This document shows, in pieces, positions 15,590 through 35,659 of a DNA stretch of 64,000 bases. The notes beneath the pieces were generated by a model. It was not told the origin of the DNA and did not search any database. It saw only the letters and a list, made by a program, of their open reading frames with translations. The position numbers and the translations under genes were made by a program. The stretch is taken from positions 5,022,001 to 5,086,000 of the forward strand of contig CATNEN010000005.1 of NCBI GenBank assembly GCA_950097015.1, written 5' to 3'. The stretch's first letter is position 1; every line of letters starts with the position of its first letter. The stretch is from Macrostomum hystrix. Taxonomy: Eukaryota > Animalia > Platyhelminthes.

Positions 15590-16244
15590 TGTTGTACCTG
15601 TGGTAGCGTGGCACACACAATTGGCAAAAATAACCAAGACAGGAACTAGATTCCGAGAGGAGATTTTACCGGCCTCACACGCAGATGCTTCCTAGCAGAG
15701 GAACAATCCGGTAGTCAGGCTAGATTACCTAGTTTCCTCGGTCCTATTTAGGCTCTAGCAGTAATTTCTATTACTTTGGTTCCCTGCTCTGAAGCCTGGC
15801 GATGTGCTATGCTTCTAAATGCAACACACGGCCTTGCTTCACAATAATGTTAGCAGACAAGATGTAAAGATTGCAAGAGAACACAATCGGTACCCAAAGG
15901 CATGAAGACTGAAGGACAGAAACGTGCCATATTCATACAGAAATCGTGCTACCATGATAACAATACCATCTCAAGGATTCGTCGGACTGTGCTCTACTTA
16001 TAGTAGGAGCATTTGAGCGTTGTTCTGCCAGTCTTCTTCCGAACTCAAGCGATTGCACCATGGTGTGCAATGTGACTCAGTGCGCAGACAGAGCTGGAAA
16101 GAGAGAGAGAGAGAGCGGAGGGGGTGGCGAGCGGATGTGACAGTGCACGGGCAACACTAACCACCAACCCTAGCCCTCCCACAGACCTAGAACAGCCTGA
16201 CTCACAGATTGCCTGGAGGCTGCTCAGCAGTCTACAGCACATCA
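15590..16244 (-). repeat. 3' LTR of Gypsy-2
   Basis: TG...CA; I could find only one difference from 21047-21701 by eye (taggagCat vs taggagTat). Confidence 0.95.
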
Positions 16245-16603
16245 TTCTCCTCCAGCTAAAGGATGACGGTCAACACCGGCTGGCCGTCAGCCGCACTTAA
16301 ACCAAAAACAGGTAAGCACCTTTTTATTTCTTCTCCAAATGATGGCGCACAAAACTACGAAAACAAATAACGACAACCAACTGAACCAAAAACGAGCATG
16401 ACAACTGGATAAACAAAAGAGCAGACGAACAGAGCGCAAACAGAAAGGGGACATACTACAACATCAAGAACAATAATGAAAACGGAGGGGCAGCAGTAGA
16501 AATAAACTGGGAGACACAATGGCGGCGCAAAACATAGCTTATGGCGTGCTGTGCACATTTGTAGAAACCCTACTTACACGCGACATGGACGGGACCCGGC
16601 GGG

Positions 16604-17515
16604 TTACATAGCGGCTGCTCGCATCAGTGACTCGGGCAGCCACCAACCCTCCACTAATTCAATTATGGCCTGTCCATACCTGGCCACCATGTGCTGCGGC
16701 GCCGCGGCCATACCTCCGACCATGACCTCCGCTCGGTCAGCGGCCTCGTGTGCCATTTCTCGCCTCGTGGCCCGGTCTTCAGCAGCGAAGCCCTGCTGAA
16801 CCGCGATCGGCCAGCCCTCGTCCTTCTCCTGTCGCGCCGCTCGAGCCAAGGATTCGGCCATACCCATGATGGCCACCTTTCGCGCCGGCTCCCTTAAACT
16901 CCACTGCGCCCGCCTTTGTCGGCGCCGCTGGGCACCGCCCCTTCGCCGCCTGGGCCTAGCCACGGCTGCGTCCAGTTCCTCAGGGCTGTCTTCTGATGAC
17001 GTGCTCTGTGACAGCGGGGGTTCGAGCACCGGCGGTGCCGCTGGCCCCTCCGGCTCCTCCTCGTGTCCACTAGAGCTATCTTCTAGCATTCCCTCGTCCT
17101 CAGAGGGCATGTCGAATTGCAGCTGTGCCCATATATCTTCATTCATGTCTACCTGGGCATCCATTGAGCCGCTGCTGCTACTGCTCTGAGCTGGTCGGCG
17201 CACCTGTATACCGGCCTCAGCCGTATCAGGTGCTGCCTGCACCGCCATGTTCCTTCTCTTCCCTGCTGGCCCGGCCGGCATTACAGCCGGACGTTTATTC
17301 GCCTGCTGCAAACGGGGAAGCGACGGCATGAAGTGTTTGTGCCAATTCGGTGAGCGCTGACCCAAAGGAAAGGGCGCACTATTACCGAATTGACTCCTTA
17401 GCAACTCCACCCGTCTACTTACCTCCATAGTCCCATCTAGTCTTCGCACCATGCCCATCAACCTTGGGCGCGTCGGCACTCGCTCCTGTGGTTCACAGTT
17501 CTCCTTATTTTCCAT
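16604..17515 (-). CDS. Gypsy-2 3' accessory ORF (303 aa), non-env, function unknown
   Basis: Intact ORF about 60 nt after the pol stop. KEN motif, PTRPRL, acidic tract, Arg-rich NLS-like RRRRGGAQRRRQRR, and a C-terminal domain conserved with 28144-28944. Confidence 0.85.
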   Translation of the reverse strand: MENKENCEPQERVPTRPRLMGMVRRLDGTMEVSRRVELLRSQFGNSAPFPLGQRSPNWHKHFMPSLPRLQQANKRPAVMPAGPAGKRRNMAVQAAPDTAEAGIQVRRPAQSSSSSGSMDAQVDMNEDIWAQLQFDMPSEDEGMLEDSSSGHEEEPEGPAAPPVLEPPLSQSTSSEDSPEELDAAVARPRRRRGGAQRRRQRRAQWSLREPARKVAIMGMAESLARAARQEKDEGWPIAVQQGFAAEDRATRREMAHEAADRAEVMVGGMAAAPQHMVARYGQAIIELVEGWWLPESLMRAAAM

Positions 17516-17577
17516 GCTTTATTTTTCTTCTTTTCTTTCTTTAGTGGGAACTTCCACGCCTTGATTCGGACAGGATG

Positions 17578-19593
17578 TCACTGAAACATTTTAGGTAGGC
17601 GGCGCATCATTCTGACGAAATAGGATTTTCTCCTGGGATCGACCTGCAGCCTTTCCGGCTCTCGCCTAACTCTTTGCGGCCTCTGCTGCGGCTCCTGATC
17701 CCTAGCTTCACCTATCTGAGCAGCCTCACCTACACCTTCGGCCCTAACACTTTCTGCAACTTCCCCGTGCACAGAGGATGGGATAGGGGACAGGGTTGGA
17801 GAGGGCAACGGACTGTCCGACGGCAGGACAACCACATCACCAGACGCCTCCCCCGCCTCTTCTCCGTTGCAGATCTTCTGGCCGACCGACTCGTGGAGAC
17901 TCGACCCAGAGGCAGCCCGCAAGTGCCACCTGCGTGCGCCCCTTAGGCCAATCTCGTCGCTGTCTTCTCCGTCGTTGCTGTCGTCTGGTTCGCCGGCTGC
18001 GTCAGCTATCGGAGGGCTACCCTGAGGCTGCCTTCCGCGCTTCCGCCGTGCCGTGCTCACCTCCTTTATCACCTGAAGTTGTTGACGGAGATGATGTTCT
18101 GACAACCTCAGCTCTTCCATCGGGTGTCGGGTTGCCGGGTCTTGGCGCTGAGCTTCCAGCAACTCAACCTGGCTAACCGGCACCTTCAGGACCGCTGCTC
18201 TTACCGGAGGCAGCCCTCCGCTGTACTCGTCCTCCTTGTCCTTGGACCCAGGAGCCCTGGCAGCAGGGGGTATCCTTGACAGGCGAGACTGGTCGCAACG
18301 AGTCTGACAACACCCCTCCACCTCTGCTCCCTGTCCCACGGAGAGACCAGCAGTCGGCAGGCAGGACTGGCTGCAACGAGCTAACTGCTGATCCTCCTGA
18401 CCCGAGGACCCTGACACAGCGGGATCAGTCGCTCGCAGGCAGGACTGGCTGCAACGAGCCAGCGACTTCTCCCCTGTTTCCGAGAACTCCTCGACAGCAG
18501 GATTCGGTGTCTGCAGGCAGGACTGGCTGCAACGAGCGGACACCTCCTCCTCTGTCTCCGGACACACCAGAGGCTCTGGATCCGGCGCCTGCAGGCAGGA
18601 CTGGCTGCAACGAGCGGGCACCTTCTCCTTTACCTCTGAGCCTTCAGCCACCACTTGAGTCTGCACCTGCGCCTTGGCATCACAGCCCCGCACCCAGTGC
18701 TCCTCCCTCGTGGCTCCCTGGCTCCAGCTACCTTCCGTAGCTACCGTCTGCACGGCGGCGTCCACAGTCTGCAGGCAGAACTGGCTGCGACGAGCTGACT
18801 GCGGGGCCCCGTAGACAGGTGCTTCCTGCCTCAAAGGCTGGCCTGCGGTCGTGTCTTCCTGACACCCTTGCAGCACCGCCTTGTCTTGGCGCACCTCGAC
18901 AGGCTCCAGGACTGGCGTCTCTTCCAACTCTGGCAGATGCTCAAGCTCATCTGCCTTCAAGGACCTTGCCAGCCCTACCAGTTTATTCCGACGAATGACA
19001 GCCGGAAAGCAAGAGGTGTTGATGACCTCAACACATCCTGTACCGTCAGCCATCGTCATCAATTTCGGAGTCATCCCTACCTGAGACGCTCCCGGCTTTA
19101 GTCCTGACTTCAAGGACTTGACAAACAGCGGCGTGCCGTGACAGTCTGTCCGGCCACCCGCTAGCTTCACCGCCACGAGCCTCGAAGAGCGCGCTGGCAC
19201 TGTGGTCCGCTCAAGTGAGTAGACCCGGCTGGCCCTCGCCTCTCGCCTCGTGTACCTCAGCGGTACTCTGGTTCCTGATTTCATGGTCAGCATCCCCTTC
19301 GGAAAATCAATCTTCTGGGTGTGCTGGCGCATGAAATCAATTCCTAAGATGTTCTCGTGCTCGCCCTTTGTCACGCAGAACTCGACGTCTACTGCGTAGT
19401 CGCCGAGCCTGACCTCAAAGGCGACTCGCCCTAAGACTGGCAACCGAGAACCATCGAAGTTGCACAGGGCACTCTCTCCTTTCAGCACAGCGTGCGGCAC
19501 TACATGCCGCAGAGATGCCCACGTCTCACTCCCAATCAGACAGCGCCTACTCCCTGAATCTAGGAGAAAGGGCACTGTCTTCTTGGAGACCAT
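17578..19593 (-). CDS. pol: Deleted pol: aspartic protease + Cys-repeat linker + integrase tail, in frame (671 aa)
   Basis: LLDSGS protease motif and ILGIDF. Collinear with Gypsy-3 pol except that RT/RH and the integrase core are missing. Confidence 0.9.
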   Translation of the reverse strand: MVSKKTVPFLLDSGSRRCLIGSETWASLRHVVPHAVLKGESALCNFDGSRLPVLGRVAFEVRLGDYAVDVEFCVTKGEHENILGIDFMRQHTQKIDFPKGMLTMKSGTRVPLRYTRREARASRVYSLERTTVPARSSRLVAVKLAGGRTDCHGTPLFVKSLKSGLKPGASQVGMTPKLMTMADGTGCVEVINTSCFPAVIRRNKLVGLARSLKADELEHLPELEETPVLEPVEVRQDKAVLQGCQEDTTAGQPLRQEAPVYGAPQSARRSQFCLQTVDAAVQTVATEGSWSQGATREEHWVRGCDAKAQVQTQVVAEGSEVKEKVPARCSQSCLQAPDPEPLVCPETEEEVSARCSQSCLQTPNPAVEEFSETGEKSLARCSQSCLRATDPAVSGSSGQEDQQLARCSQSCLPTAGLSVGQGAEVEGCCQTRCDQSRLSRIPPAARAPGSKDKEDEYSGGLPPVRAAVLKVPVSQVELLEAQRQDPATRHPMEELRLSEHHLRQQLQVIKEVSTARRKRGRQPQGSPPIADAAGEPDDSNDGEDSDEIGLRGARRWHLRAASGSSLHESVGQKICNGEEAGEASGDVVVLPSDSPLPSPTLSPIPSSVHGEVAESVRAEGVGEAAQIGEARDQEPQQRPQRVRREPERLQVDPRRKSYFVRMMRRLPKMFQ
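18355..18620 (-). repeat. 78-bp coding repeat (ARCSQSCL motif every 26 aa)
   Basis: GCAGGACTGGCTGCAACGAG at 18361, 18439, 18517 and 18595 with divergent in-frame intervening sequence; related units at about 18775 and in Gypsy-3 at 30880-31165. Confidence 0.92.
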
Positions 19594-19694
19594 CGCCGTT
19601 ACATAGGGGTCAGCGTTGGAGGCATACCAACGCTCGAGGAAGCTGGTGCTAGGAGAGCCCCTACCCTCTCCTCCAGCTTGCTCCTCAGTTCCCC

Positions 19695-20984
19695 TCAGGC
19701 CCGTCCAGGAACTGGACTGCGAGGGGCATCGCCTTCCATGCTCCTCGCCGTCCCGTTTCCCGACGTCTGAGTGCCTTGGGCCTGCAGCTCGGACTGCTGC
19801 CTGGGCTCTTGCCGTTGCTCTCTCAGGTACCCCTGTGCGTGGTGCTCATAACGCGGCTTAGGTGGCCTCGTCGGGCAATCACGCCTCAGGTGTCCAAACT
19901 TTCCGCAACCAAAGCATGCCCCTCTTGGCGGCGCCGGTCCTTCCTGCTGCACGGCTCCCTGTGGTCGACTGAGTGCCTGGACCAGCATCTCCTGCATCTC
20001 TTGCTGATGCTGAAGCTGCTGTCCCTGCACTTCGACCATCTTGGTCATCAGCGATTCGAGTCCCTTCAGCGCAGCGGTAACACCTTGCGGTGGCGGCCGC
20101 GCATTCAGGTCCTCGTCGTCGCCGTGCACCATCCGAGCCGGCCCATCCTTCGCCCTCTGGACTGCATCGTCGACCACCTCTAGGCGCTTTAGCTCTCGCC
20201 TAGCCTCCAGGAGTGTCCTAGGGCGAGTCCGCAGTAGGTGCTTGCGGTTCTCAACCGAAGTGCAAGCTCCCTTAATAAACTGGTCGACCAACTCATAGTC
20301 CAGGTCTCTCTGGCGAAGGTTGGTATAGGCCTGCTCACCGAGTCCCTGCAACACATCAGCATAGTCATCAAGCGTTTCCGCTTTCTTCTGATAGCGATTG
20401 CGGAACTCGTCTCGGTACTCCTCAGGGCTACTCAGCTGCGCGAATCGCTCCACAATACGCTCCTTGAATTGGGCATACGTGAGCTCTTCGGGCAGCCTCA
20501 TCCTGAGGACGGCATTCAGGCACTGTACATCGAGGTGGTCGAGTAGAAGGGCCTTGCGTGTCTCCGAACTGCGAATCGCAGCCCGGGCGCAATACGCTTC
20601 AAACGCCTCCACCCACAGATGTACGTCCTGGCCCCGAGAAAACTTGGCAATCTTCGCCGTCCTACCTTGTTGTTGTTCCACCTGCTTCTCCATCAGGTTG
20701 AGCATCCGGTACACCAGGTCAGCCGTCGCCCTGTCGTCCAGCCTCGGTCGTCGTCGCCTTGCTGCCGCTGCCGCTGCGCCCCGGTCGTCGTCCTCGCCGC
20801 CGGACTGGTCGTCGTCGCCGAAGTCGCTCTCGCCGTCCTCGCCGTCGCCGACACAGTCGTTGCCGCGGCCGTTCCACCGACTCCTGCCCGCAGCTTCCTG
20901 CAGCGCACAGCCACCGCGAGACTCCTTGCTCCGGGCTACCTGCTGCCTCTCCTCCCTCTCCGAATCCAATTCCTCTTGGGACAT
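19695..20984 (-). CDS. gag: Gypsy-2 gag (429 aa)
   Basis: Directly after PBS; capsid-like region (DVHLWVEAFE...) and CCHC knuckle CFGCGKFGHLRRDC. Confidence 0.93.
   Translation of the reverse strand: MSQEELDSEREERQQVARSKESRGGCALQEAAGRSRWNGRGNDCVGDGEDGESDFGDDDQSGGEDDDRGAAAAAARRRRPRLDDRATADLVYRMLNLMEKQVEQQQGRTAKIAKFSRGQDVHLWVEAFEAYCARAAIRSSETRKALLLDHLDVQCLNAVLRMRLPEELTYAQFKERIVERFAQLSSPEEYRDEFRNRYQKKAETLDDYADVLQGLGEQAYTNLRQRDLDYELVDQFIKGACTSVENRKHLLRTRPRTLLEARRELKRLEVVDDAVQRAKDGPARMVHGDDEDLNARPPPQGVTAALKGLESLMTKMVEVQGQQLQHQQEMQEMLVQALSRPQGAVQQEGPAPPRGACFGCGKFGHLRRDCPTRPPKPRYEHHAQGYLREQRQEPRQQSELQAQGTQTSGNGTARSMEGDAPRSPVPGRA
19719..19761 (-). promoter_or_regulatory. -1 programmed ribosomal frameshift signal (gag/pol)
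   Basis: G GGA AAC slippery heptamer in the gag frame, 6-nt spacer, GC-rich hairpin; the -1 frame is open into the protease. Confidence 0.8.
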
Positions 20985-21046
20985 GGCGTTCGTATCCGCA
21001 GTGAATGAGTAAAAGGCTAACTCGAATCACACCGCTTTGCCACCAA

Positions 21047-21701
21047 TGTTGTACCTGTGGTAGCGTGGCACACACAATTGGCAAAAATAACCAAGACAGG
21101 AACTAGATTCCGAGAGGAGATTTTACCGGCCTCACACGCAGATGCTTCCTAGCAGAGGAACAATCCGGTAGTCAGGCTAGATTACCTAGTTTCCTCGGTC
21201 CTATTTAGGCTCTAGCAGTAATTTCTATTACTTTGGTTCCCTGCTCTGAAGCCTGGCGATGTGCTATGCTTCTAAATGCAACACACGGCCTTGCTTCACA
21301 ATAATGTTAGCAGACAAGATGTAAAGATTGCAAGAGAACACAATCGGTACCCAAAGGCATGAAGACTGAAGGACAGAAACGTGCCATATTCATACAGAAA
21401 TCGTGCTACCATGATAACAATACCATCTCAAGGATTCGTCGGACTGTGCTCTACTTATAGTAGGAGTATTTGAGCGTTGTTCTGCCAGTCTTCTTCCGAA
21501 CTCAAGCGATTGCACCATGGTGTGCAATGTGACTCAGTGCGCAGACAGAGCTGGAAAGAGAGAGAGAGAGAGCGGAGGGGGTGGCGAGCGGATGTGACAG
21601 TGCACGGGCAACACTAACCACCAACCCTAGCCCTCCCACAGACCTAGAACAGCCTGACTCACAGATTGCCTGGAGGCTGCTCAGCAGTCTACAGCACATC
21701 A
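21047..21701 (-). repeat. 5' LTR of Gypsy-2
   Basis: Near-identical to 15590-16244; followed on the minus strand by PBS TGGTGGCA; TSD CACA outside. Confidence 0.95.
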
Positions 21702-21924
21702 CACAATATGTCGCACAGTTGTCACATATTCTTCTTCATCACCTCGCTCTTTTTAATCAATTCTCACAACTAGGAAGGTGCTCATTAATATTTACTTATC
21801 GACCATCTGTCACTTAAATTAACTGACATGCGGGCAATATCCAATTTCCTAATTTATTCCTGTTGACTCATCTGCCTTCTCTAATCTATTTACTCTGTTT
21901 ACATAATTTCTTATTTGATTATCC

Positions 21925-22280
21925 TGATTCTGCTGGTTCTGCTGCGGAATCTGAATCCGCCACGGCTGTGCAACGGCACCCGGCTGATCATCCGGAGCTG
22001 GGCGAGAATGTGCTGCGCTGCAAAGTCGCTGCCGGCCAGTTCACTGGAGATGAAATCCTGCTGCCGCGGATTTCCCTACAGCCCAACAATGCTGACCTGC
22101 CAGTCTGCTTCAAGCGGCTGCAGTTCCCGGTGAAGCCCAGCTTTTGCCTGACGATTCACAAGTCTCAGGGGCAGAGCCTGGAGACAGTCGGCATCGACCT
22201 GGCAGTTGGATGCTTTGCGCACGGCCAGTTATATACTGCGCTGTCTCGAGCGAAAAATGTAGCAAATGTCCGGGTCCGGT
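21925..22280 (+). pseudogene. Helitron PIF1-like helicase C-terminal fragment with one frameshift
   Basis: LLRNLNPPRLCNGTRL then LLPRI...FKRLQFPVKPSFCLTIHKSQGQSL...HGQLYTALSR. Confidence 0.92.
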
Positions 22281-23455
22281 TTATCAATCTGTCTAGCAGT
22301 CTAGCAGCCTGTCAATGTATCTTTCAACTAACTGTCATACAAATCTGTCATACTGTCATGCAGATCAGTCATCTGTCATACAAACTGATTTAGACACAGC
22401 TGCGAAGCTGATTTAGGCACAGCTGATTTAGGCATAGCTGCGAAACTTATTTGAATCAAACTGGTTGAATCAGCCATTGATATTAGCTATTACACATAGC
22501 AAACTATCAAGATGTGATCTGATTTGAAATGTACTCGTATTCAAAAAGGGGTTTGATTTAAAGTGGGATTTGACAATGCGAATGAGGCATGTGAGAAAAG
22601 AGAAGTTCGCTGAGGAGTGACTAGAAAGGAGAAGGGGAAATAATGTGAAAATGGAGCAATGAAACTATAGAATATAAAATCAAAGGAGAAAAGGCAGAAC
22701 TGAGCTTCTGAGATTGGATTTAAACTGGAACAGCATAGGACAACAATTTATTGCCGTAGATATTGTTTGATATATCTACAAGCAGAATGGGATCTGATTG
22801 AAAATGGGATCTGATTGAAAATAGGATATGATTCAAATTGGAATTTGATGAAAATGAGTACCTCTGAGTTCTGCAAATGTATGAAATTTCAGATCAGCAG
22901 ATCTGTAAGTCTTTAAGACTGATTATCGCTAGCTGACAAACTGACAGTTTGTGACAATACCGAGTATCCTCAATTCTTGAAATTCGCTTTCTCTGTTCTA
23001 TACAGTGTATTTTAAATGGCATGAAAGTTTGCAACGAAATGGTTGCCCTGGCATGAATCAATTTTCCCTTCCTGTACTTTTATTGTAATACTTCTCAGTT
23101 CAACAAATAATTACTGTGGGATCTGCAAATAGTGGACTATTTTCACTCTGAGATTAGCCAATATCTCCCAGTTTAGCAAGTAATCGTCAGTTCTTGACAC
23201 GCACCTTCTCTGTTCTATGCAGTGTATTTTAAATCGCATGAAAGTTTGCAACGAAATGGTTCCCCTTGCATGAATCGATTTTCCCTTCCTGTACTTTGAT
23301 TATAATACTGTGTTGATCCAAGCGAAAAAATGAGTCTGTAGTAATCGTAAATGTAAGCAAATAATCAAATTATAATAAATTTATTTTTCAAGGCAGTTTC
23401 ATTCTTATTTCAGCGCTAAAGTTTGCGTTGAACCGCTAAAGTTCGCATCGCACTT

Positions 23456-23921
23456 TCATTTGGTGCTGTTGCTGCCGTTGTTGCTGCTGCTACTGCTGGA
23501 GCTGCTGATCCGCTCGTGCTCCTGCTGCTGCTGCTGCTGCTTCCGCTCCTGCAGCAGGCGCAAATTTCGCAGCTTTTCATTTAGCCTTTGTTCTTGTTGC
23601 TGTTGTTGTTCCTGCTGCTGCCGGTGCTCGGCGACGGCGGGGCAGCGTGCTATGCGGTGAGGCCCACCGCAGAGGTAACACGAGACTGTATGAATTGAGT
23701 GTTAAGAATGTTGCAATGAGTGTTAGAATTGTACCAAGTTTTTATTGTCTAACTGAATGCCTGACGGAAGGACTTAGTGAAAATAAATGACCAAGTAAGG
23801 CAGATGTATAGAATTATAGGCAGACACAATGTTACTTACTGGGTCCTCTGCGGTGGCCTCCCCGACCGCGACGTCCGCCGCCGCCGCCGCCGCCGGCATA
23901 GTAGTTGTGGTTGATTTTCAT
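23456..23921 (-). CDS. Two-exon gene (103 aa): Gly/RGG tract + CCHC-like knuckle + poly-Q helix
   Basis: Exon 1 23921-23840 (A|GTAAGT), exon 2 23685-23456 (TACAG|). Splices in frame to MKINHNYYAGGGGGGGRRGRGGHRRGPISCYLCGGPHRIARCP...QQQ. Absent from the supplied ORF track. Confidence 0.68.
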
Positions 23922-23944
23922 GGTTGTGGGCCATTCAGTGTTGT

Positions 23945-24500
23945 ACGTCATATAAATATACTCCACCGTAAGGGCTGGATTTCAACCAGTGCTCAAAACC
24001 CTGCAGATTAGCTTGGTCCATTCTGATTGGCTTTGAGCTTTTAGGCAGTCCAAAGTTGTCTCAGCCAGTTTGCGTCTAGAAGTTTTTTTGTATCGTCTAG
24101 ACGTTACGTTGTAGTTGAGGTAGGACAGCTTAATGCTGTGTGATTTGAGATTGGTGTATACAGTGGGTGGTGTTCTGCCATTTTGACTGGCTTAGCTTTA
24201 TCAGCTCATTAGGGTTTGGAATTGTACCATGGTTAATATCAAAGCTGTTTCTGATTGGTCAGCAGCTTTTGGGCCCACTCCTCACTTATGTTATTGGGGG
24301 TGGTGGATTTGAGGGGTCTGGTGGTTGCCACACCCAATTGAAAGTGGCGTGAGTCATCGCACTTTTAAGTGCACGGTGGGTTGTTATTTTGAAATGAATA
24401 TAGAGATAATATAAGCGACAGCGACTTTTATATCAAACTAAACAGCCCTATCTAAGTGCAAAATGTTTGTTCTGTCATTTTCTAGACTTTTCTGTTTACT
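23945..24500. promoter_or_regulatory. Putative bidirectional promoter between the knuckle gene and the RPA-like gene
   Basis: TATA-like TATAAATATA at 23951-23960, ATTGG/CCAAT at about 24026, 24150 and 24254; head-to-head gene arrangement. Confidence 0.4.
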
Positions 24501-24516
24501 TAATAGCAAACGAACG

Positions 24517-26013
24517 ATGGAGTCGCCTGCCGGACAAGCCAAGAAGAGCAAAATGTGCGTATCTGCTCTGCGAAGTCTCTGATGCTTCCAACTGGTACAG
24601 ACAGGCTGTGACTAGCCAACAGTGCTTCGAGGCGGTGCGCATCACCCGAAGTGTTCAACAGGAGAACAAGGCGTCACGAGATGAAGAAATGGTGATGCAA
24701 TTCCGGGCCTGATGGAGGTTGCTGTCGTCGGCCTGGTGACGATGCTGACGACCATCAAGGACTTTGTCGGCAAGGACGAACCGGGCCAAGTGTTCTCCTT
24801 CGTCCTAAGTGATGACACGGGGGACATTCGAGTGAGCGTGTTTGGCACAGATCTGAGGCCACTTCTGGACGTCTGCCAAGCCGACGAGGCCGTGCGCATA
24901 ACCGGAGGTTGGGTGAAGAAGGCAAATTCGGCGTACAACCGTACGGTTAACCAATACGAGATGACCGTATCTGTTGACAAATCTGGTGTTATTGTGAAGA
25001 CAAACGAGACGGTTTCTCGACGTGCATCTATGTACAGGAAAATTAATGAGATTTCCGGAAGCCAGATTAACACGTGAGTAATATTGTTGACAGGTTATTA
25101 TAGTCGTTTTACTCTGGGATCTTTGTGGCTTATTAGACTGCAGTTTATAGATACTACAAGCTTGGCAGCCTTCGTGCAGTCGCTTTTAGTCATTTGTTTT
25201 CCATTTCCATACAACGCAGGAATGTCGACGTTCGTGGAACAATCTCTGCAGTCGAGAAACCGCGGGAAGTGAAAACCGGTGCCGGAAAGCTGGTGAACCT
25301 AGCGAAAGTGACGCTCGTGGATCAGTCTGGGTGCCAAGTATCGTGTACCTTCTGGGCTACCTCTGCCACCAAGGTGACTAACTGGTCCGTGGGCGACGTT
25401 CTGGCCATTCGAGGTGCGCAAGTCCAGGAGTTCGCCGAAGCGGTTAGTCTCGGTTGTTCCAAAGCGGAGGTGCAGCATTGGCCAGAAGACTCTGCCGAAG
25501 TCTCTGATGCTTCCGACTGGTACAGACAGGCTGTGACTAGCCAACAGTGCTTCGAGGCGGTGCGCATCACCCGAAGTGTTCAACAGGAGAACAAGGCGTC
25601 ACGAGATGACGAAATGGTGATGCAATACCCCGAGCGAATGTATAGCCAATTCAACGGTGTACAACGAATCCGACTGCGTTTCGGAGACAAGGAGGTGAGT
25701 TTATTTGACGGAACTAACGCGAATTTTCTGCTTCGCGACTCTACCCTTTAACTGAGGGACTGAATAATGCTGCTGACCACACCCCTATATTATGCATTTT
25801 CCATTGTCTAAAAGGATGGAAATGGGGCACGCACACGTATGCAACAGTATTATATTAAGACTTCCTAATTAAAGAGATTTTATCCCCCATTTCATTTCGC
25901 AGATTACATTCTCCCGAGACGGGCAATACAGGAGCCAGCAGGTCCTCACTTCTACGCCTAGAGCTGATGTGGCTGAGCATTACGGCGACTCGCGAATGTC
26001 TATGGACGAGTAA
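24517..26013 (+). CDS. Helitron-borne RPA70-like OB-fold ssDNA-binding protein, multi-exon, 5' part disrupted by a duplication
   Basis: DBD-A-like (FSFVLSDDTGDIRVSVF...VKKAN...NQYEM) and DBD-B-like (VDVRG...TLVDQSG...CTFW...LAIRGAQV). Introns 25074-25219 and 25695-25902 with GTGAGT donors; last exon ends at TAA 26013. Confidence 0.75.
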
Positions 26014-28143
26014 TTGGTTCGGACAAGGATTTCAACCTGAACTACTCAGATTGAGTGTAGCATGGGTGAGACAGTTGCTGTGTAATTGCGTCTGTGAGAT
26101 GTTGCAGTGAGTCGCCATCACAAGTTGAGCCGCCTGATGTGTAAATGGTGCATGATAGTTGAGCTCTGCCCATTGGCCCAATGAGTCACATCAGCGTAAA
26201 TCCTGTTCCTTTTGGAGCAGGTTGACTGCATATCAATGGGCCTTGAGAGACGTGGTTGAAATACGTGTTCGCTGCTTATCACGATTCAGAGGTTCTTCCA
26301 CGCTAAAATGGAGGGTATGCAGCCATGGTCTGAAGCAGCCTAATCGCAGACCTTAAATCTTGTGATGGCCGACTAAGCATGTTGAGCTGTGCTGTGGCAA
26401 GAGTGAATGAACTTGCTTAATGCCGACCCCGGCTGTGAATGCTTTCCAAGCAGTACAAAGCGTTTTGTGTGATGTTGAGTGCGTGAACTTAACTTGCCCC
26501 AGTGAATGCCTCTGACCAGCAGTGCAGAGTAAAGCAAGCCAACAAGCAGTATGATTGACACCATTATTCTTGCAGTCAAATGCAATGAACTGTGCAATGA
26601 TACTGTCTTGTTGGCGGAGCCTTCTGCAAGTTCATCATCATGTTTACTGTTTGTGTAAATATTTTTAGGTGCAATGCAGTTTTTTCTTTTTTAATTGAAT
26701 TGAATTCTCTACATTTGCAGTTTGTTTTCTTATAACGTCATAATGATATGTATTTGTATAATAATAATTTTGCCGAATGCTCACTCAATTGTTGTTTTGT
26801 TGTTTTCAATGTGTTTTGTAATTGAAGAAATACAAATAAATGTTTTAGTGGACAAAGACCAGTCCCATGATTAATGAATCTACTACACTCCTGGTACCTG
26901 CCTTATTCTATTTTAAAAGACATTGTCAGGCATGCATTTGTAATGAAGAATGATACATAATGGATTACTAAGAAAATAGGTCAGATGAGAAATAGGATCT
27001 GATGAGAACTGGAATCATTAAGAAAAAGAAAGGAGATTAGAAATTGATCCATTGATATTTAATTAGCCATTGATATTAGCTATCCATTATGAACTATCAA
27101 AATGGGATCTAATTTGAAATATACTTTTATGTAAAATGGGATTTGATTCAAAATAAGATTTGACAATGTGAATGAGGCATATAAGAAAAGAGAAGTCTGC
27201 TGAGGAGTGTGACTAGAAAAGAGAGTGGGAATTTAGTATGATACTGATATATCATATATCATAGCTATATATAGCCAGTGTTAGCTTTATTAAAAGCGTC
27301 AAACCAAAGGTCGAAGGATGTAGCTCCAGTTGCTTTTGCAAAGTCCATTCACAATGAGATAGCTGCATTGAACTGACTCTTTAAGTTATTTATTATAATA
27401 AGAGGGCCTCATTCAAGGGCAATAGTTGCAATGCGGAGCTACTTATTGTTCGGAACGTTGCAGTCGCAGTTAGTACGATGAGCAGGGCTTAGAAATTCAC
27501 TTACAAATGAAGAAAGTAAAAAATTTGTCTGAATGTGTATAAATCTGTAGTACACATGAGCAATACAAGCAACAAGAAAATCGGAATAAAGCAAATCATT
27601 TCTCTGATAGTCGGAATTTCTTGGAATAAAATTAAATTTCATTTTCAGTAACAACTACAAAAGTGCTCTGAACAATTTTATGTATAAAATGAGTAAGATA
27701 ATTTTATTAAAAGCGTTGACATATAAAAGCTCCAAACAAAGAAACCGTAAAAAAGTTGATAGTTTTGTTTTACCTAAAATTGCGTTATTAACGATCTCCC
27801 AAAAATTCCTATTTTCAATAGAGAAAATTATCGTATTATTTTCACTTTTAAGTACTGAATATGGCTCCCCGAAGGGGGGCAAAAACTTGCTAGTTCGTAC
27901 TAAAAACAAACAGAAGGAGAACACACCACATAGGGTCCAGTAAAACAAACTAATAACTTAACGAACTAGCAAATAAGCGAGCATGGCACATGAAAACTGG
28001 ATAATAGACAGGCATAAACAACATATCATTAAGCATTAAGTACGAAAAACATGCAATTTTTAAGTCCGCGCTATTACCAGCGCCATGCCTCATGTCCTGG
28101 ATAAACAAATTAAAACATCGCCCTTTACCATTCACCTTGGCCC

Positions 28144-28944
28144 TCAGAAGCTGGCCATGCGGACCAGGGCCTCTGGGTACCACGTACCCTCTACCAGCTC
28201 GACTACCGCTTGCCCGTACCGAGCCACGAGGTGGTAGGGCGTACGAGCTGGACCTCCGAGCGTTGCTTCAGCACGGGCGGCTGCCTCGTGCAACATCTCT
28301 AGCCTTGTGGCTCGTTGCTCTTCAGTAAACGCTCTTTGTGCAGCGGCCGGCCACCCCTCGTCTAGCTGTCCACGAGCAGCGCGCATCAACGATTCGGCTA
28401 CTGCCTGCGTTGCAGCCTCCCGGTCGGCTGCCCGCATGCCCCAGCGAGCTCGCTTCTGACGGCGCCGCTGGGCGCCTCCTCGTCGGCGTCGCCTCTGTTG
28501 TTCGGGCTCCGCTGCATCGTCGCTAGATGACGACGAGCTCGGTGGCCGTGGTGCCTCTAGCAACCCTATTTGTGGGGGTGCCGCAGGGCCTTCCGCCTCC
28601 ACGAATTCGTCTGGGTCCGAATCCGGATCGGCCATGCCCTCATCATCTGAGGGCATCCCAACCTGCAGTTCGGCCCACAAATCCTCTTCTGGGTCAAACT
28701 GGGCCTCCACCGACCCACTGCTGCTGCTACTGGAAGCCGGCCTTCTAGCCTGCACTCCCACTTCAGCCGTGGTGGGTACTGATTGCGTGGCTTTACAAAG
28801 CCTCTTTGATCGAGGTCCCGATGCTTTGCTGGCCGGGCGCTTGTGGATCTGCTCTACTGGCTCTCCGACTTTGCGCACAACTCCCATCAATCGAGGGCGT
28901 GTCGGCAACCTATCTTCGGGTCCAAGATTTTCCTTATCTTCCAT
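28144..28944 (-). CDS. Gypsy-3 3' accessory ORF (266 aa), homolog of 16604-17515
   Basis: MEDKENLGPEDRLPTRPRL, RRRRRGGAQRRRQKR, DEGWP, RATRxEM, HxVARYGQA, ELVEG shared with the Gypsy-2 ORF. Confidence 0.85.
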   Translation of the reverse strand: MEDKENLGPEDRLPTRPRLMGVVRKVGEPVEQIHKRPASKASGPRSKRLCKATQSVPTTAEVGVQARRPASSSSSSGSVEAQFDPEEDLWAELQVGMPSDDEGMADPDSDPDEFVEAEGPAAPPQIGLLEAPRPPSSSSSSDDAAEPEQQRRRRRGGAQRRRQKRARWGMRAADREAATQAVAESLMRAARGQLDEGWPAAAQRAFTEEQRATRLEMLHEAAARAEATLGGPARTPYHLVARYGQAVVELVEGTWYPEALVRMASF

Positions 28945-29028
28945 GATATCGCTTCCTTCTTCTTTCAGTCTTCTAAAGAGTATTCCTTTTCTTTAGGGAA
29001 GCTTCGGCGCTTTGATTCGGAATGGGAG

Positions 29029-32000
29029 TCACTGAAACATTGTAGGTAGGCCATACATCGCTCTGATAAAATAGGATTTCTTGCTAGGATCTATTTTTAG
29101 CCTTTCCGGCTCTCGCCTTTCTCTCTGCGGCCTCTGCCGCGGCTCTAGATCCCTAGCCTCACCTACTTGAGCAGCCTCACCTACTTCCTCGGCCCTAACA
29201 CCATCTGCAACTTCCCCGTGCACAGAGGATGGGATAGGGGGCAGGGTTGGAGAGGGCAACGGACTGTCCGACGGCAGGACAACCACATCACCAGACGCCT
29301 CCCCCGCCTCTTCTCCGTTGCAGATTTCCTGGCCGACCGGTTCTTCGAGATTCGACCTGGAGGCAGCTCGTGATCGCAGGTGCCACCTACGAGCGCCCCA
29401 CAGGCCGATCTCATCGTCGTCGTCGTTATCGCTGTCTTCTGGCTCGCCGGACGCGTCAGCTGTCGGAGGGCTACCCTTGGATGGCCTCTCGAGCTTTCGC
29501 CTTGCCGTGCTCGCCTCCTCCGTCCTGTCGCACATCGAGGCCGGTACAGGGAGCAAGTTGGGCCGATGGACTACCAGCACCTGCTTCCTGGCCTTCTTGG
29601 TGCTGCCGTGTCGCCGGATCTTGTAAACTGTCTCGCCTTTGCTCTCGAGCACTACGTAGACCGACTGTCTGGGCCGATGAAATTTACTGATCTCGCCGGC
29701 CTCGATCACCGGATTGTTGAGTAGGACCAGCTGGCCCGGGCGGAGTGGTCTCGCCTGCGGTCTTTCCTGATAATGCTCTTCCCGCAGCACCTGATACCTT
29801 TCGAGCTTGTCCCGGGCGCAATTGACAGCCTGGTCTATGCGCTCCTGGAACTGTCGGAGATAATCTGGCAGGTCTGCGTACTCAGCCAGTGCGGTCAGCG
29901 TGTTGTCGACAGGCAGCCGGTACTCCCGTCCGAAGACCAGGAAGTACGGCGTGTACCCGGTCACAGGGTGGACACTGGTGCGCAACGCGATTAAGCACGC
30001 GGGCAGCATAAGGTCCCAATCCCTGTGATCCTTTTCCAACAAGCACGTGAGCACTGACTTAATCTGGCGATTCAGATTTTCGACCTGGCCATTGCTGGCC
30101 GGGTTATAGGGACACGTGTGCGTGTGACGGATGCCGTACAGCTTACAGAAGTCCTCAAACTCTGCACTCATAAAGTTCGTCCCCTGGTCAGTGTGCAGCC
30201 AGGCTGGTGCACCGTACTCGGGAATGAACCTATCTAGCAGCAGTTTGATCACTGTCTTAGTCTTCTGGTTTCGCATCGGATAGGCAAACGGGTACTTCGA
30301 AGTTGCATCACACAGGGTGAGGATGTACCGATGTCCTCGGGCACTTGGTTGTGACAAAGGCCCGATCACGTCGGCGTGCACCCTTCCTAAGACCTCACAC
30401 ACTGGAAAGCTCTGCGGTGGAACCATCTCCTTCCGCCTTGTCTTGCTTTCCAGGCATGTCCTGCAACGCGCCACGTACCCCGTCGCCTCCGACCAGAGAC
30501 CGGGTCTCCAGAACCTGTCTCTAACTCTCTGCACTGTCTTGGACTGGCCGAGATGACCCGCCAAAGGTGAGTCGTGCAAGGCCTCAAAGACGCGCGAGTC
30601 TAATGCTTTCGGTAGCACCGGTCGCGGCGGCCGGTTGTCATCAAAGTCAATGACGAGCAACCCGTCGCGCACCTCCAGCTCCTCAAATGCACCCAGGAGG
30701 TCTCTGACCTCTTTCGGCATCTGGAGTCGCTGATCGAACCTGGGATTTTGCCTTCCTGACAGCTTGAGTTCCGTCAGATACCTGATTGCTGGGTCTTGGT
30801 GCTGAGCTTCTAGCAACTCGACGCGACTCTAGCGACTTCTCCCCTGTTTTTGAGAACTCCTCAACAGCAGGACTCGGTGTCTGCAGGCAGGACTGGCTGC
30901 AACGAGCGGACACTTCCTCCTCTGTCTCCGGACACACCAGAGGCTCTGGATCCGGCGCCTGCAGGCAGAACTGGCTGCAACAAGCGGGCACTTTTTCCTT
31001 TACCTCTGAGCCTTCCGCCACCACCTGAGTCTGCACCTGTGCCTTGGCATCACAGCCCCGCACCCAGTGCTCCTCCCTTGTAGCTCCCTGGCTCCAGCTA
31101 CCTTCAGTAGCTACCGTCTGTACGGCGGCGTCCACAGTCTGCAGGCAGAACTGGCTGCAACGAGCTGACTGCGGAGCCCCGTAGACAGGTGCTTCCCGCC
31201 TCAAAAGCTGGCCTGCGGTCGTGTTTTCCTTACACTCTTGCAGCACCGCCTTATCGTGGCGCACCTGGACAGGCTCCAGGACCGGCTCTTCCACCAGTCC
31301 TTCAGACACAGCTGCTTTCCTTCCTGATCGGCCGTCCATGACCTCCTGGGCCTTGGGTTTCACAGCTCGCAGTGGTTCTGCGGCCTCATTGGTTTCACCC
31401 TATTTATTGATCCCTTCCTGTCCCTCCTCCAGCTGACTCGAAAATTGGCGGGTCCAAGCACTCGCACCGAACTGGTTGTGGGGTGTTAATACTTCAAAAG
31501 AACAATTGACCGGATTATCTGGTTTTCTCGACATCGAGTCAGCATTTTGGTGAGACTTTCCAGGACGATGAACAATGGTGAAATCAAACTCACTCATCCT
31601 CTCAACCCAACGGCCCAAGATGCCTGTCGCCTCAGTCTGATGCATGAGCCACAGCAGGGCCTTGTGATCAGACCGGACCACAAACTTCTTGCCAACCAGG
31701 AAGTACCGGAAATGCCGCATCGCATCTACGACTGCCAACAGTTCCTTGCGGGTCGTAGTGTAGCGGGTCTCCGGCCCTCGCAGCTTCCGGCTGTAGTAGC
31801 CAACAGGCCTCTCTACTCCATCAGACTGCAGCTGATTCAGACAAGCTCCTATGCGGTCATCAGAGGCATCTGTGTCGAGGATGAAAGTGACTTTCGGGTC
31901 AGAGGTGTACTCCGGGTACGCCAGTACCTCCGTAGAGCACAACGCATCCTTCAATACCTGGAAAGCCCTCTCATGCTCTGTCTTCCACAGACCCTTCAAG

Positions 32001-33848
32001 CTGGTAACGTCCCGCTTAGTGAGCTCATGCAATGATGCTGCAATCCCTGAGTAGTTGCGGACGAACTTTTTGTAGTACTGTGCCAACCCCAAGAAGCTGC
32101 GCAGTTCCTTGGCGCTTCGAGGTGTCGGCCAGCCTCTGAGCTCGGCGATCTTGTCCTCGTTCGTCAGGATGCCTTCAGGTGTCACCACATGGCCTAAATA
32201 GTGCAGCTCCCTCTTAAACAGGTGGCACTTCTTTGGCTTCAGTTTGAACTGGGCTTCACGGATTCGCGTCAGCATCATCCTCAGATGCTCCAAGTGATCG
32301 TCAAAGGTAGGCGAGTGGACGAGTATATCATCCATATACCCCAACGCTACCTTTGGCGTCAGCCCCTCCAGCAGCTTGTTGATACAGCGCTGAAAGGACC
32401 CTGCCGAATCCGTCATGCCCATCGGCAACACTGTAAATTCAAACTGACCTCTGTGGTGAACCGAGAACGCGGTCAGGTGTCTGTCCTGCTCTCTCAGCGG
32501 GATCAGCCAGAAACCCTGAGCAAGATCGAGGGCGGAATAATACTGCGCCCCCCTCAAGTGCTCGAAGGACTGCTGAATGTCTGGCAGCGGATAGACATGT
32601 TTCAGGCAGCGACTGTTTAACTCGCGATAATCCAAAGACAATCCTGATCGTCTTGTCTTTCTTAGGGACGATCAGGAGAGGCGTGTTGTAGCTAGAGAAT
32701 GTCGGCTTGATGATGCCTTTTGCCAACATCTCATCCAGCATCTTGTCCAGCTGTTCCATCAAGTGAGGTGGGATCCTCCTCGGTGGAATGCGGACTGGGG
32801 TGGGATCTGTCACAATGATCTCATGAGTGACCAGGTCAGTAACACCATGGTCCAGGGGATGCATTGCGAATGCCTCGCGGCACTCTCTCAACATCTCTCT
32901 AACCCGATGTCTCTGCTCCTCGGTCAATCTCTCACAGATCTCCACGTCATCTAGCCATGCCTCATCGCTCTCCAGCCCTTCTGCCTGAACCTGCCTGACT
33001 GGCGTCTCCTCTAGCTCTGGCAGATATTCAAGTTCGTCTGCCTTCAACGGCCTTGCCAGCCCTACTAGTCCATTGCGCCGTATGACAGCCGGGAAGCAAG
33101 AGGTGTTGATGACCTCTACACATCCTGTCCCGTCAGCCATCGTCAGCAATGTCGGAGCCATCTCGACCTGAGACGCCCCTGGCTTCAGCCCTGACTTCAA
33201 GGACTCAACAAGCAGCGGCGTGCCGTGACAGTCAGTCCGGCCACCCGCTAGCTTCACCGCTACGAGCATCGAAGAGCGCGCTGGCACAGTGGTCTGCTCG
33301 AGTGAGTAAACCCGACTGGCCCTCGCCTCTCGCCTCGTGAACCTCAGCGGCACACTGGTTCCTGATTTCATGGTCAGCATCCCCTTCGGAAAGTCAATCT
33401 TCTGGGTGTGCTGGCGCATGAAATCAATTCCTAAGATGTTCTCGTGTTCGCCCTTTGTCACGCAGAACTCGACGTCTACTGCGTAGTCGCCGAGCCTGAC
33501 CTCAAAGGCGACTCGCCCTAAGACTGGCAACCGAGAACCATCGAAGTTGCACAGGGCACTCTCTCCTGTCAGCACAGCGTGCGGCACTACATGCCTCAGA
33601 GATGCCCACGTCTCACTTCCAATTAGACAGCGCCTGCTCCCTGAGTCTAGGAGAAAGGGCACCGTCTTCTTGGAAACCATCGCCGTCACGTAGGGGTCAG
33701 CGTTGGAGGCATACCAACGCTCGAGGAAGCTGGTACTAGGAGAGCCCCCACCCTCTCCTCCAGCTAGCTCCTCAGTTCCCCTCAGGCCCGTCCAGGAACT
33801 GGACCGCGAGGGGCACTGCCGTCCGTGCTCCTCGCCATCCCGTTTCCC
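29029..33848 (-). pseudogene. pol: Gypsy-3 pol in four frames (PR 32439-33689, RT/RH 31400-32641, linker 30683-31363, IN 29029-30816)
   Basis: LLDSGS; LDYRELN; YMDD; DTDAS/ELLAVV/SDHKAL/NADSMSR; HHCC and DVIGP/TDQGTNF/NGQVE. Breaks are small indels, so they could be decay or assembly errors. Confidence 0.93.
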
Positions 33849-34933: not shown

Positions 34934-34971
34934 GGCGTTCGTTTCCGCAGTGAATGAGTAAAAAGGCTAAC

Positions 34972-34993
34972 TCGAATCCCACCGCTGCCACCA
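34972..34993 (-). other. Primer-binding site complementary to the 3' end of tRNA-Leu
   Basis: Plus strand reads TCGAATCCCACCGCTGCCACCA, the familiar 3' end of metazoan tRNA-Leu(AAG/UAG) plus CCA; located 1 nt from the LTR. Confidence 0.85.
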
Positions 34994-34994
34994 A

Positions 34995-35659
34995 TGTTGT
35001 ACCTGTGGTAGCGTGGCACACATAATTGGTAAAATGACCAAGACCGGACGCTGGATTCAGAGAGGATTTTATACCGGCCTCAACACTGATGCTTCCTAGC
35101 AGTGGAGCAACCCGGTAGTCAGGCTAGATTACTTTGTTTCCTCGGGATCTTCCTGAATCACTCTAAGACTCCCTCGTCTTTGAACCGTGCTCTGAATTTG
35201 ACGGTATACCTTGCTTTTAAATGCGATATACGGCCAAGCTTCTCAATAAGTTGCAGAAGTTGCAAGTTTGGATTCTACTCAGTTGCAATAGGAGGCAAAC
35301 GTGAGTGAACACGGAACGCATGAAGATAGGAAGACAGAATCGTGCCATCAATATAAAGAAATAGTGCTACCACGATACTGACACCATCTCATGGATTCGT
35401 CGGACTGTGCTCTACTTATAGTAGGAGCATTTGAGCGTTGTTCTGCCAGTCTTCTTCCGAACTTAAGCGATTGCACCATGGTGTGCCATGTGACTCAGTG
35501 CGCAGACAGAGCTGGAACGAGAGAGAGAAAGCGAAGGGGGTGGCGAGCGGTGACAGTGCACGGGAAACACTAACTACCTACACCCCAGCCCTCCCACAGA
35601 CCTAGAACAGCCTGACTCACAGATTGCCTGGAGGCTGCTCAGCAGTCAACAGCACATCA
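34995..35659 (-). repeat. 5' LTR of Gypsy-3 (665 bp)
   Basis: TGTTGTACCTGTGGTAGCG...CAGCACATCA; same ends as the Gypsy-2 LTRs but visibly diverged internally. Confidence 0.93.

Follow-up and report, generated by a model that had tools for sequence, protein, structure and literature searches.

An intact, selectively maintained accessory ORF beyond pol in a metazoan Ty3/Gypsy family, with candidate nuclear-targeting and degron motifs

Two related Ty3/Gypsy elements lie on the minus strand of the window (the whole 64-kb stretch of DNA analysed), and each carries an intact accessory ORF with an ATG start (Table 1). Element 1 is bounded by LTRs that are 99.8-100% identical and have TG..CA ends, and a 4-bp target-site duplication, CACA, can be read directly in its flanks (15586-15589 and 21702-21705). 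A PBS-like TGGTGGC... starts one base past the end of its 5' LTR. The pol frame of this element is open, but two internal stretches kept in element 2, 2,636 nt in total, are deleted from it. The domains for RT, RNase H and the integrase core are missing with those deletions, and only gag and PR are retained in Pfam searches. In element 2 an in-frame stop and two frame changes break pol into four ORF pieces. The Pfam domains of this element follow the order zf-CCHC, Asp_protease_2, RVT_1, RT_RNaseH, Integrase_H2C2, rve. The pol ORF pieces were searched separately in Pfam, and all alignments are of natural sequences, with nothing repaired or frame-joined. No 3' LTR of element 2 occurs anywhere in the 64-kb window. 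Its 5' LTR is about 80% identical overall to that of element 1, rising to 98% over the first ~78 nt of U3. The features expected of Ty3/Gypsy (Metaviridae) elements are present: direct LTRs, TG..CA ends and a short duplication in element 1, and a CCHC gag followed by the order PR-RT-RNase H-IN in element 2.

Table 1. Features of the two elements, with coordinates given as positions in the window
Feature	Coordinates	Strand	Basis
Element 1, complete non-autonomous Ty3/Gypsy insertion	15590..21701	-	LTR pair and target-site duplication
Element 1 3' LTR, 655 bp	15590..16244	-	
Element 1 accessory 3' UTR, 359 nt, short purine run before LTR	16245..16603	-	
Accessory ORF copy 1, 303 aa	16604..17515	-	
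Element 1 pol-accessory spacer, 62 nt, purine-rich, no ATG	17516..17577	-	
Element 1 pol-frame ORF, 671 aa, internally deleted	17578..19593	-	Pfam: protease domain only
Element 1 gag, 429 aa, CCHC zinc knuckle	19695..20984	-	
Element 1 5' LTR, 655 bp	21047..21701	-	
Element 2, minimum extent (accessory stop codon to 5' LTR)	28144..35659	-	
Accessory ORF copy 2, 266 aa, architecture of copy 1	28144..28944	-	
Element 2 pol-accessory spacer, 84 nt, purine-rich, no ATG	28945..29028	-	
Element 2 pol, broken (PR, RT, RNase H, integrase H2C2 and core)	29029..33689	-	Pfam
Element 2 gag, 383 aa, CCHC zinc knuckle	33782..34933	-	
Element 2 5' LTR	34995..35659	-	

The initial annotation had described both pol genes as broken, which they are, in element 2 by the frame changes and the stop and in element 1 by internal deletion; it did not recognise element 1 as a non-autonomous insertion that is complete and very young. 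A third element of the same window, Gypsy-1 (161-4093), belongs to another family, its RT being 29% identical, and the 160 nt remaining after its pol contain no accessory-like sequence.

The accessory gene occurs in two copies only in the window, in each case separated from the pol-frame stop by the spacer listed in Table 1. [quoted passage not shown] The two proteins are clearly homologous (BLASTP E 3e-66 with 48% identity across 310 columns; MAFFT gives 58% over the residues it aligns) and share an N-terminal KEN block, a PTRPRL motif, a Ser/acidic tract and an Arg cluster, all four of which the initial annotation had listed. Its manual estimate of 55-60% identity for a C-terminal domain of ~100 aa agrees with the measured 57/100 residues (61% over 117 columns). 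The probability that such frames stay open by composition alone is 2e-5 and 2e-4 for the two copies. The accessory ORFs resemble gag in composition (GC 0.61-0.62, GC3 0.58-0.64), with the surrounding DNA at 37-42% GC. Antisense ORFs of 107-120 aa also occur here. Both accessory ORFs are best read as representing a lineage-specific ORF3 that belongs to a single Ty3/Gypsy retrotransposon family of a metazoan host.

A check on selective constraint had been proposed with the initial annotation. Run between the two copies of the window, it shows pN (0.29) well below a saturated pS (0.80; Fisher p 5e-36), not neutral evolution. All sub-regions of the gene show the same pattern, with pN/pS between 0.16 and 0.40 and the lowest value, 0.16, in the Arg cluster. 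Purifying selection has therefore acted on the accessory protein throughout a period long enough for synonymous changes to reach saturation. The remainder of the elements has a different history, which had been overlooked: divergence there is far smaller than in the accessory genes. Gag of the two elements is 95% identical (dS 0.11). Where a fourfold-degenerate codon encodes the same residue in both elements, its third base agrees in 99 of 107 cases in gag and in only 19 of 57 in the accessory ORF. Identity between the elements is 0.95-0.97 across gag and protease, and drops from 0.97 to 0.79 over the final 300 nt of pol; the spacer stands at 0.66, the accessory ORF at ~0.6 and the 3' UTR at ~0.4-0.5, before 98% is regained at the start of U3. 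Given the saturated synonymous sites of the accessory gene and the dS of gag, the accessory gene with its 3' UTR is an old, diverged cassette on a young, near-identical gag-protease backbone, and a mosaic of this kind points to exchange by recombination between element lineages. Editing or hypermutation as the source of the divergence is ruled out by the substitution spectrum, as ts/tv in the accessory region is low (0.5-0.9, against 1.7-3.3 in gag) and the directions are symmetric. Near-identical backbones carry the gene as an exchangeable cassette, which has also been kept in a very young non-autonomous copy.

The protein shows no resemblance to env. It has neither a signal-like nor a TM or hydrophobic segment (the maximal Kyte-Doolittle mean over 19 residues is 0.65) and is soluble; with no env family in Pfam and no such fold matched in PDB or BFVD, an env identity is ruled out, as the initial annotation had argued. 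The accessory protein differs in all these respects from the env of errantiviruses and retroviruses. It is the product of a genuine protein-coding, selectively maintained gene of a non-env type. AF2 models of copy 1 predict disorder over residues 1-190 (pLDDT <50) and helices between residues 194 and 302 (pLDDT 60-87), and copy 2, modelled independently, gives the same helix order at lower confidence. The predicted layout consists of ~190 disordered residues, the Arg cluster and a helical domain of ~100 residues.

An exhaustive HMMER search of 1.84 billion proteins returned one relative, the fragmentary P0001, and word-indexed searches queried with the complete protein, with P0001 or with an alignment of the C-terminal domain found nothing beyond it. 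Searches of Pfam and of PDB sequences at E up to 10, with the whole protein and each half, yielded noise alone (Phage_ASH, E 0.18, and a transketolase, E 0.23). Foldseek matches of the copy 1 model were generic and helical, both in PDB (best E 1.1) and in BFVD (best E 0.064, TM at most 0.16); because the models are of moderate confidence (mean pLDDT 54.8), these negative fold searches are not strong. The orphan status assigned to the conserved domain withstood the profile and structure searches, which gave no known env or host-gene match in Pfam, PDB, BFVD or the 1.84 billion proteins. Recent capture of a host gene is disfavoured by the element-like composition and by the missing host homologue. 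The family sample comprises three sequences, one of them a fragment, and motif conservation is correspondingly weakly sampled.

Several features suggest where the protein acts. Both copies contain a bipartite NLS pattern (KR-x10-KRxxx), and all three family proteins have an Arg cluster with 10-11 K/R in 17 residues, almost all of them Arg. These motifs back the earlier proposal of a nuclear protein, and the accessory protein is probably nuclear. Arg clusters are also known in nucleolar, chaperone and capsid-type proteins, and RNA regulation is one reading only. The ATG of the accessory ORF has A at -3 and G at +4 in both elements, and the spacer contains no upstream ATG; given this strong context, translation of the protein would begin at that ATG. 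A subgenomic mRNA produced by splicing is the probable message, as suggested by a pyrimidine-rich, acceptor-like ...CAG at the very end of pol, judged by eye, and the purine-rich tract that follows it. Reinitiation after pol would be an alternative route.

The whole is tentatively explained, with slightly less than even confidence, by an ORF3 product that acts as a nuclear or nucleolar RNA-binding regulator of its own element and is perhaps tied to the cell cycle. With the bipartite NLS and the Arg cluster as targeting signals, the protein would reach the nucleus or nucleolus and may there regulate transcript handling, export or activation of its own element by binding RNA, as CERV does for Cer1. 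Its abundance may, in addition, be linked to the cell cycle by the conserved N-terminal motifs [D/N]KENxxP and RxxLxx[LIVM]. Its compact arrangement of N-terminal motif block, Arg cluster and 100-residue helical domain makes it a candidate for nuclear self-regulation by a retroelement.

Complex retroviruses encode small regulators 3' of pol (Rev, Rex, Rec, Tat and foamy-virus Tas), which are made from spliced mRNA. In these proteins an Arg-rich stretch serves both as NLS and as RNA-binding element and is joined to a helical region. An Arg-rich motif of this type is present here; neither a conserved NES-like pattern nor, in the 3' UTR, a structured element was detected. NES-like patterns share one start position in the two copies but fall into different NES classes there, and none is convincingly conserved between them. 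The 3' UTR of element 1 is pyrimidine-rich and less structured than its shuffles (z +2.03), with no excess structure that would suggest a response element. None of Rev, Rex, Rec, Tat and Tas came up as a match in Pfam, in PDB sequence searches or in Foldseek searches of PDB and BFVD. The likeness is a resemblance only, and membership of this group of regulators is unsupported.

The closest system in kind is CERV, encoded by the Ty3/Gypsy element Cer1 of Caenorhabditis elegans, which is nuclear by experiment and needed for export of unspliced genomic RNA (PMC10309623). Both proteins are lineage-restricted, without outside homologues, equipped with NLS-type motifs and highly divergent between related elements. 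They differ in construction: CERV has 517 aa encoded by five exons, the first three in the gag frame, and H, M (Cys loop) and G (GTPase-like) domains (PMC10309623), whereas the accessory protein has 266-303 aa, its own ATG, and an Arg cluster with a small helical bundle. There is no sign of homology, as the exhaustive HMMER search gave P0001 only and the models contain neither a Cys loop nor a G-like domain. The ORF3s of LTR retrotransposons are diverse, have a modular make-up and are in most cases expressed from spliced mRNA (PMC5408684). Those of bdelloid rotifers resemble the accessory gene in being family-specific, located after pol, free of the TM and coiled-coil features of env and subject to modular shuffling, and one is likewise kept in a non-autonomous derivative (PMC5408684). 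Rotifer ORF3s with an assigned function are, however, GDSL esterases or DEDDy exonucleases, whereas the protein described here has no recognisable domain. Non-env accessory genes are widespread in LTR retrotransposons, and almost none has a known function, CERV being a rare tested case. The present gene adds a clean orphan example from another animal lineage, constrained after synonymous similarity has been erased.

The N-terminal motifs allow a second reading, in which the accessory protein is a cell-cycle-gated substrate of the APC/C or a pseudosubstrate that occupies its co-activators in dividing cells. Both copies have [D/N]KENxxP at residues 3-9, a match that arises in at most 1 of 40,000 composition-preserving shuffles, and N or D at -1 and P at +3 are informative in the context of KEN boxes (PMC3315528). 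At residue 16 both have RPRLMG[M/V] (RPRLMGM in copy 1), which fits the ELM D-box RxxLxx[LIVM] and follows the KEN motif by 12 residues; both motifs fall within the region modelled as disordered. The first 30 residues are constrained, with a pN/pS of 0.29 despite saturated synonymous sites. The initial annotation had proposed KEN and RxxL degrons. That proposal stands as far as the extended KEN context and the ELM D-box are concerned, and the case for degron motifs appears somewhat stronger than was stated; it does not extend to the strict D-box RxxLxxxxN, which is absent from both copies, or to P0001, which as called has no KEN and no D-box, only an RKRLMKS-like stretch. The KENxxx[N/D] context is likewise not satisfied in either copy. 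At 17/30 identical residues, against an average of 58% for the protein, the N-terminal block is no more than average in conservation. KEN and RxxL are permissive motifs and give frequent false positives (PMC3315528), and a literature search found no paper connecting a retroelement protein with KEN or D-box degrons. Known APC/C substrates and pseudosubstrates with tandem KEN and D-box (PMC3315528) are similar in the motif pair, which lies here in a disordered N-terminus, but the accessory protein departs from them in the strict D-box and in P0001, and the likeness is one of motifs alone.

On these data the reading of the protein as a cell-cycle-gated APC/C substrate, or as a pseudosubstrate, is plausible but unlikely. 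If the degrons are genuine and read by the host, for which the expectation is similarly low, the protein would accumulate only in cycling cells such as those of the germline or early embryo, or would occupy the co-activators as a pseudosubstrate. The expression programme of a mobile element would in either case be coupled directly to the ubiquitin machinery of the cell cycle. The same reading also has the gene moving between element lineages as an exchangeable cassette. Real KEN and D-box motifs would also bear on whether mobile elements read the host cell cycle via the APC/C.

A transcriptional transactivator of the LTR is a distinctly less probable identity. The acidic/Ser tract, which includes hydrophobic residues and contains D[IL]WA[QE]LQ and DEGM blocks in both copies (DEGM also in P0001), would be the activation domain, with the Arg cluster and the helices binding nucleic acid; the NLS, the Arg cluster and the 98% conservation of the start of U3 between the elements are consistent with this. 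The resemblance is at the level of motifs, however, and no known activator was matched by sequence or fold. Rather improbable is a particle-associated nucleic-acid chaperone or structural accessory packaged with genomic RNA. Such a role would suit an Arg cluster that is the most constrained segment of the protein, and chaperones typically have disordered regions of basic and acidic character, but gag already supplies a CCHC nucleocapsid knuckle, the bipartite NLS indicates the nucleus, and no capsid-like fold was matched in PDB or BFVD. Very improbable is an antagonist of host small-RNA silencing acting through a GW 'Ago-hook'-like motif: all three proteins have a GW with acidic or polar flanks in a loop between helices, but this is a single dipeptide within a folded domain, Ago hooks are usually repeated and disordered, and nothing else speaks in its favour. 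The idea of a non-functional sequence (a chance open frame, a decayed env or a passive host fragment) appeals to the missing database homologues, to the absence of the exact sequences from a 15-billion-protein collection and to the long spurious ORFs that GC-rich DNA yields, such as the antisense ones here, and is hardly credible in the face of the pN/pS result, the low chance of an open frame, conservation across saturated synonymous divergence, the lack of a TM remnant and a composition like that of the element and unlike that of the surrounding host DNA.

The two related Ty3/Gypsy elements of the window, element 1 and element 2, each contain an extra open reading frame between pol and the 3' end, located on the minus strand where the initial annotation had placed it. 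All of the sequence blocks quoted there occur in both copies, which are clearly homologous (BLASTP E 3e-66, 48% identity over 310 columns; 58% of aligned residues identical in MAFFT). No third copy was found in the window by tblastn with both proteins as queries. The accessory ORF is a true gene, because synonymous and nonsynonymous differences contrast strongly between the copies (pS 0.80, saturated; pN 0.29; Fisher p 5e-36), the pattern is uniform over sub-regions (pN/pS of 0.29 in the N-terminal 30 residues, 0.40 in the middle, 0.16 in the Arg cluster and 0.36 in the C-terminal domain), third bases have turned over under identical residues (matches at 19/57 fourfold-degenerate sites, ~28% being expected by composition), and the frames would rarely stay open by chance (2e-5 and 2e-4 for the two ORFs). 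The ratio is thus not the dN/dS near 1 that had been named as evidence against the initial proposal. The product is not env-like in that it has no hydrophobic stretch (maximum KD(19) 0.65), in agreement with the reported lack of a TM segment. The gene is a lineage-specific non-env ORF3 (an extra gene 3' of pol), a kind already known, and its added interest lies in a cassette mosaic and a degron-like block.

Coordinates of the accessory ORFs, their carrier elements and neighbouring features
Feature	Position	Strand	Description
Accessory ORF copy 1	16604-17515	minus	303 aa
Accessory ORF copy 2	28144-28944	minus	266 aa
Element 1	15590-21701	minus	complete insertion: LTRs, target-site duplication, PBS-like site, purine run
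Element 1 3' UTR	16245-16603	minus	359 nt past accessory stop
Element 2	at least 28144-35659	minus	5' LTR, gag, PR, RT, RNase H, integrase, accessory ORF
Integrase-bearing ORF piece, element 2	29029-30816	minus
Small ORF	14738-15058	minus	just outside element 1
ER.PTRPRL in small ORF	14916-14932
Histone 3' UTR stem-loop	14371-14416	minus	Rfam
Gypsy pol of different family	161-4093	minus	1,310 aa; RT, RNase H, integrase
Copia-type fragment	37525-38061	minus	gag_pre-integrs, Pol_BBD
Direct repeat at Copia-type fragment	37016-37107 / 37611-37702		92 nt
Direct repeat between Gypsy elements	22966-23309		127 nt
Direct repeat between Gypsy elements	24571-25629		134 nt

The mosaic structure of the two elements was missed by the initial annotation. 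Their gag genes share 94.8% nucleotide identity (358/383 residues, dS 0.108; agreement at 99/107 fourfold sites), and the protease ORF begins with an identity of 0.97 between the elements. Across the final 300 nt of pol, identity falls from 0.97 through 0.89 to 0.79; the values are 0.66 for the spacer, ~0.6 for the accessory ORF and 0.4-0.5 for the 3' UTR, and the first ~78 nt of U3 are back up to 98%. The accessory ORF and 3' UTR thus form a cassette of ancient divergence, set on a backbone that the elements have shared recently, because gag and protease are near-identical, the cassette itself is diverged, and its substitution spectrum is saturated (ts/tv 0.5-0.9 in the accessory pair, with symmetric directions, versus 1.7-3.3 in gag). 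The low ts/tv and the symmetric directions also led us to reject editing as the source of the divergence. Recombination between lineages is the simplest cause, and ORF3 modules of other retroelements are known to recombine in this way (PMC5408684). The accessory ORF resembles gag in GC and GC3 and differs from the DNA around it, evidence against recent capture of a host gene.

The carriers are GC-rich (52-61%) elements inserted in a transposon-rich window of 37-45% GC. Element 1 has 655-bp LTRs with TG..CA ends, a PBS-like TGGTGGC one base past the 5' LTR and, just ahead of the 3' LTR, a short run of purines; its insertion is very recent, because the LTRs are 99.8-100% identical and the 4-bp target-site duplication (CACA) is intact. 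It encodes gag (429 aa, CCHC), a pol-frame ORF of 671 aa with protease as its sole Pfam domain, and the accessory ORF. Its pol is open and lacks two stretches present in element 2 (2,636 nt together), so that RT, RNase H and the integrase core are gone, while its gag contains one in-frame 138-nt stretch absent from element 2. By these features it is a very young non-autonomous derivative, and the enzymes for its insertion presumably came from another copy. Gag, protease and the accessory ORF are all kept open. The pol of element 2 is broken into four ORF pieces by two frame changes and one in-frame stop, and no 3' LTR of this element was found anywhere in the window. The broken pol was searched piece by piece. 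Past the integrase core, the piece that bears it has a long uncharacterised region (~355 residues) that matches no Pfam family, and identity to element 1 begins to drop in the last 100 codons of this region.

Both pol frames close on an identical pyrimidine-rich ...tttcag followed by tga. The spacers to the accessory ORFs (62 and 84 nt) contain no ATG and have a purine fraction of 0.68-0.78 in the final 40 nt, and each accessory start codon is flanked by A at -3 and G at +4. A candidate acceptor at ...tttcag, with a downstream purine-rich enhancer, could therefore yield a subgenomic mRNA in which the accessory ATG comes first; the same signals would also fit reinitiation after pol. The accessory frame relative to pol differs between the elements, which makes it unlikely that pol is extended by conserved read-through. 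Read on the sense strand, the 3' UTR of element 1 is pyrimidine/T-rich; it is also unusually unstructured, folding more poorly than 100/100 shuffles (z +2.03).

Relatives of the protein are scarce. There were no Pfam families or PDB sequence matches, no significant fold match in PDB or BFVD (Foldseek), and no hits in word-indexed searches with the whole protein or the C-terminal domain separately. When 1.84 billion representatives were searched exhaustively with HMMER, without a length filter, a single match was returned: P0001 (248 aa, E 3.3e-7, ~30% identical), which is the only member of its cluster and derives from a Logan contig of 1,336 nt. This fragmentary relative keeps the order of the AVQ..AP..AE block, DEGM, Arg cluster and GW; its N-terminus differs, and it ends within the C-terminal domain. 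The window's two ORFs are absent from a 15-billion-protein collection.

In AlphaFold2 models (three-sequence alignment), residues 1-190 are disordered (pLDDT below 50) and helices are predicted at 194-207, 209-227, 237-244, 248-266, 273-290 and 294-302 (pLDDT 60-87). An independent model of the C-terminal 117 residues of the other copy gave an identical helix order at lower confidence. Both copies contain [D/N]KENxxP at residues 3-9, RPRLMG[M/V] at residue 16, a run of Ser leading into an acidic tract (6-7 CK2-type sites), a bipartite KR-x10-KRxxx pattern, an Arg cluster (10-11 K/R per 17 residues) and GW within a loop. The initial annotation, confirmed in its observation, is partly supported in its interpretation: the best-supported reading is that the element's ORF3 encodes a nuclear, Arg-rich regulator. 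In position and kind the gene is analogous to that of CERV, the accessory protein of C. elegans Cer1, which is nuclear, produced from a spliced mRNA and needed for genomic RNA export (PMC10309623). However, neither homology nor domain content matches, which rules out membership in the CERV family. Rev, Rex, Rec, Tat and Tas were not returned as named matches, and neither an NES conserved in the two copies nor a structured element in the 3' UTR was found. Coupling to APC/C through KEN and D-box degrons, also proposed initially, is a motif-level hypothesis that we consider unlikely. Some support comes from the KEN context, which is extended, and from the D-box, which is of the ELM type, both in sequence modelled as disordered. 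However, the strict D-box does not match, P0001 as called has neither motif, such motifs are loose (PMC3315528), and we found no literature precedent tying a retroelement protein to these degrons.

The small ORF just outside element 1 matches the accessory N-terminus at 8/9 positions of ER.PTRPRL (pairwise E 0.006), and the window contains 3 occurrences of back-translated PTRPRL versus 0.04 expected. The remainder, acidic at the N-terminus and with a Gly/Ser repeat, has no Pfam match and lacks collinearity with the accessory protein; the ORF may be what is left of a different cassette type, or the match a coincidence. Downstream on the same strand lies a histone 3' UTR stem-loop (34.9 bits, gathering score 34), with no histone-fold ORF nearby. 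On the strength of this stem-loop we regard the host as a metazoan, and the presence of young Ty3/Gypsy and Copia elements speaks against human. The unbroken Gypsy pol at the low-coordinate end of the window (stop 160 nt from it) belongs to a different family, its RT being 29% identical to that of element 2. The repeat adjoining the Copia-type fragment is 100% identical at 595-nt spacing. The direct repeats that lie between elements 1 and 2 (127 nt, 217-nt spacing, 89% identical; 134 nt, 925-nt spacing, 98% identical) probably represent other repeats or the remains of transposons.
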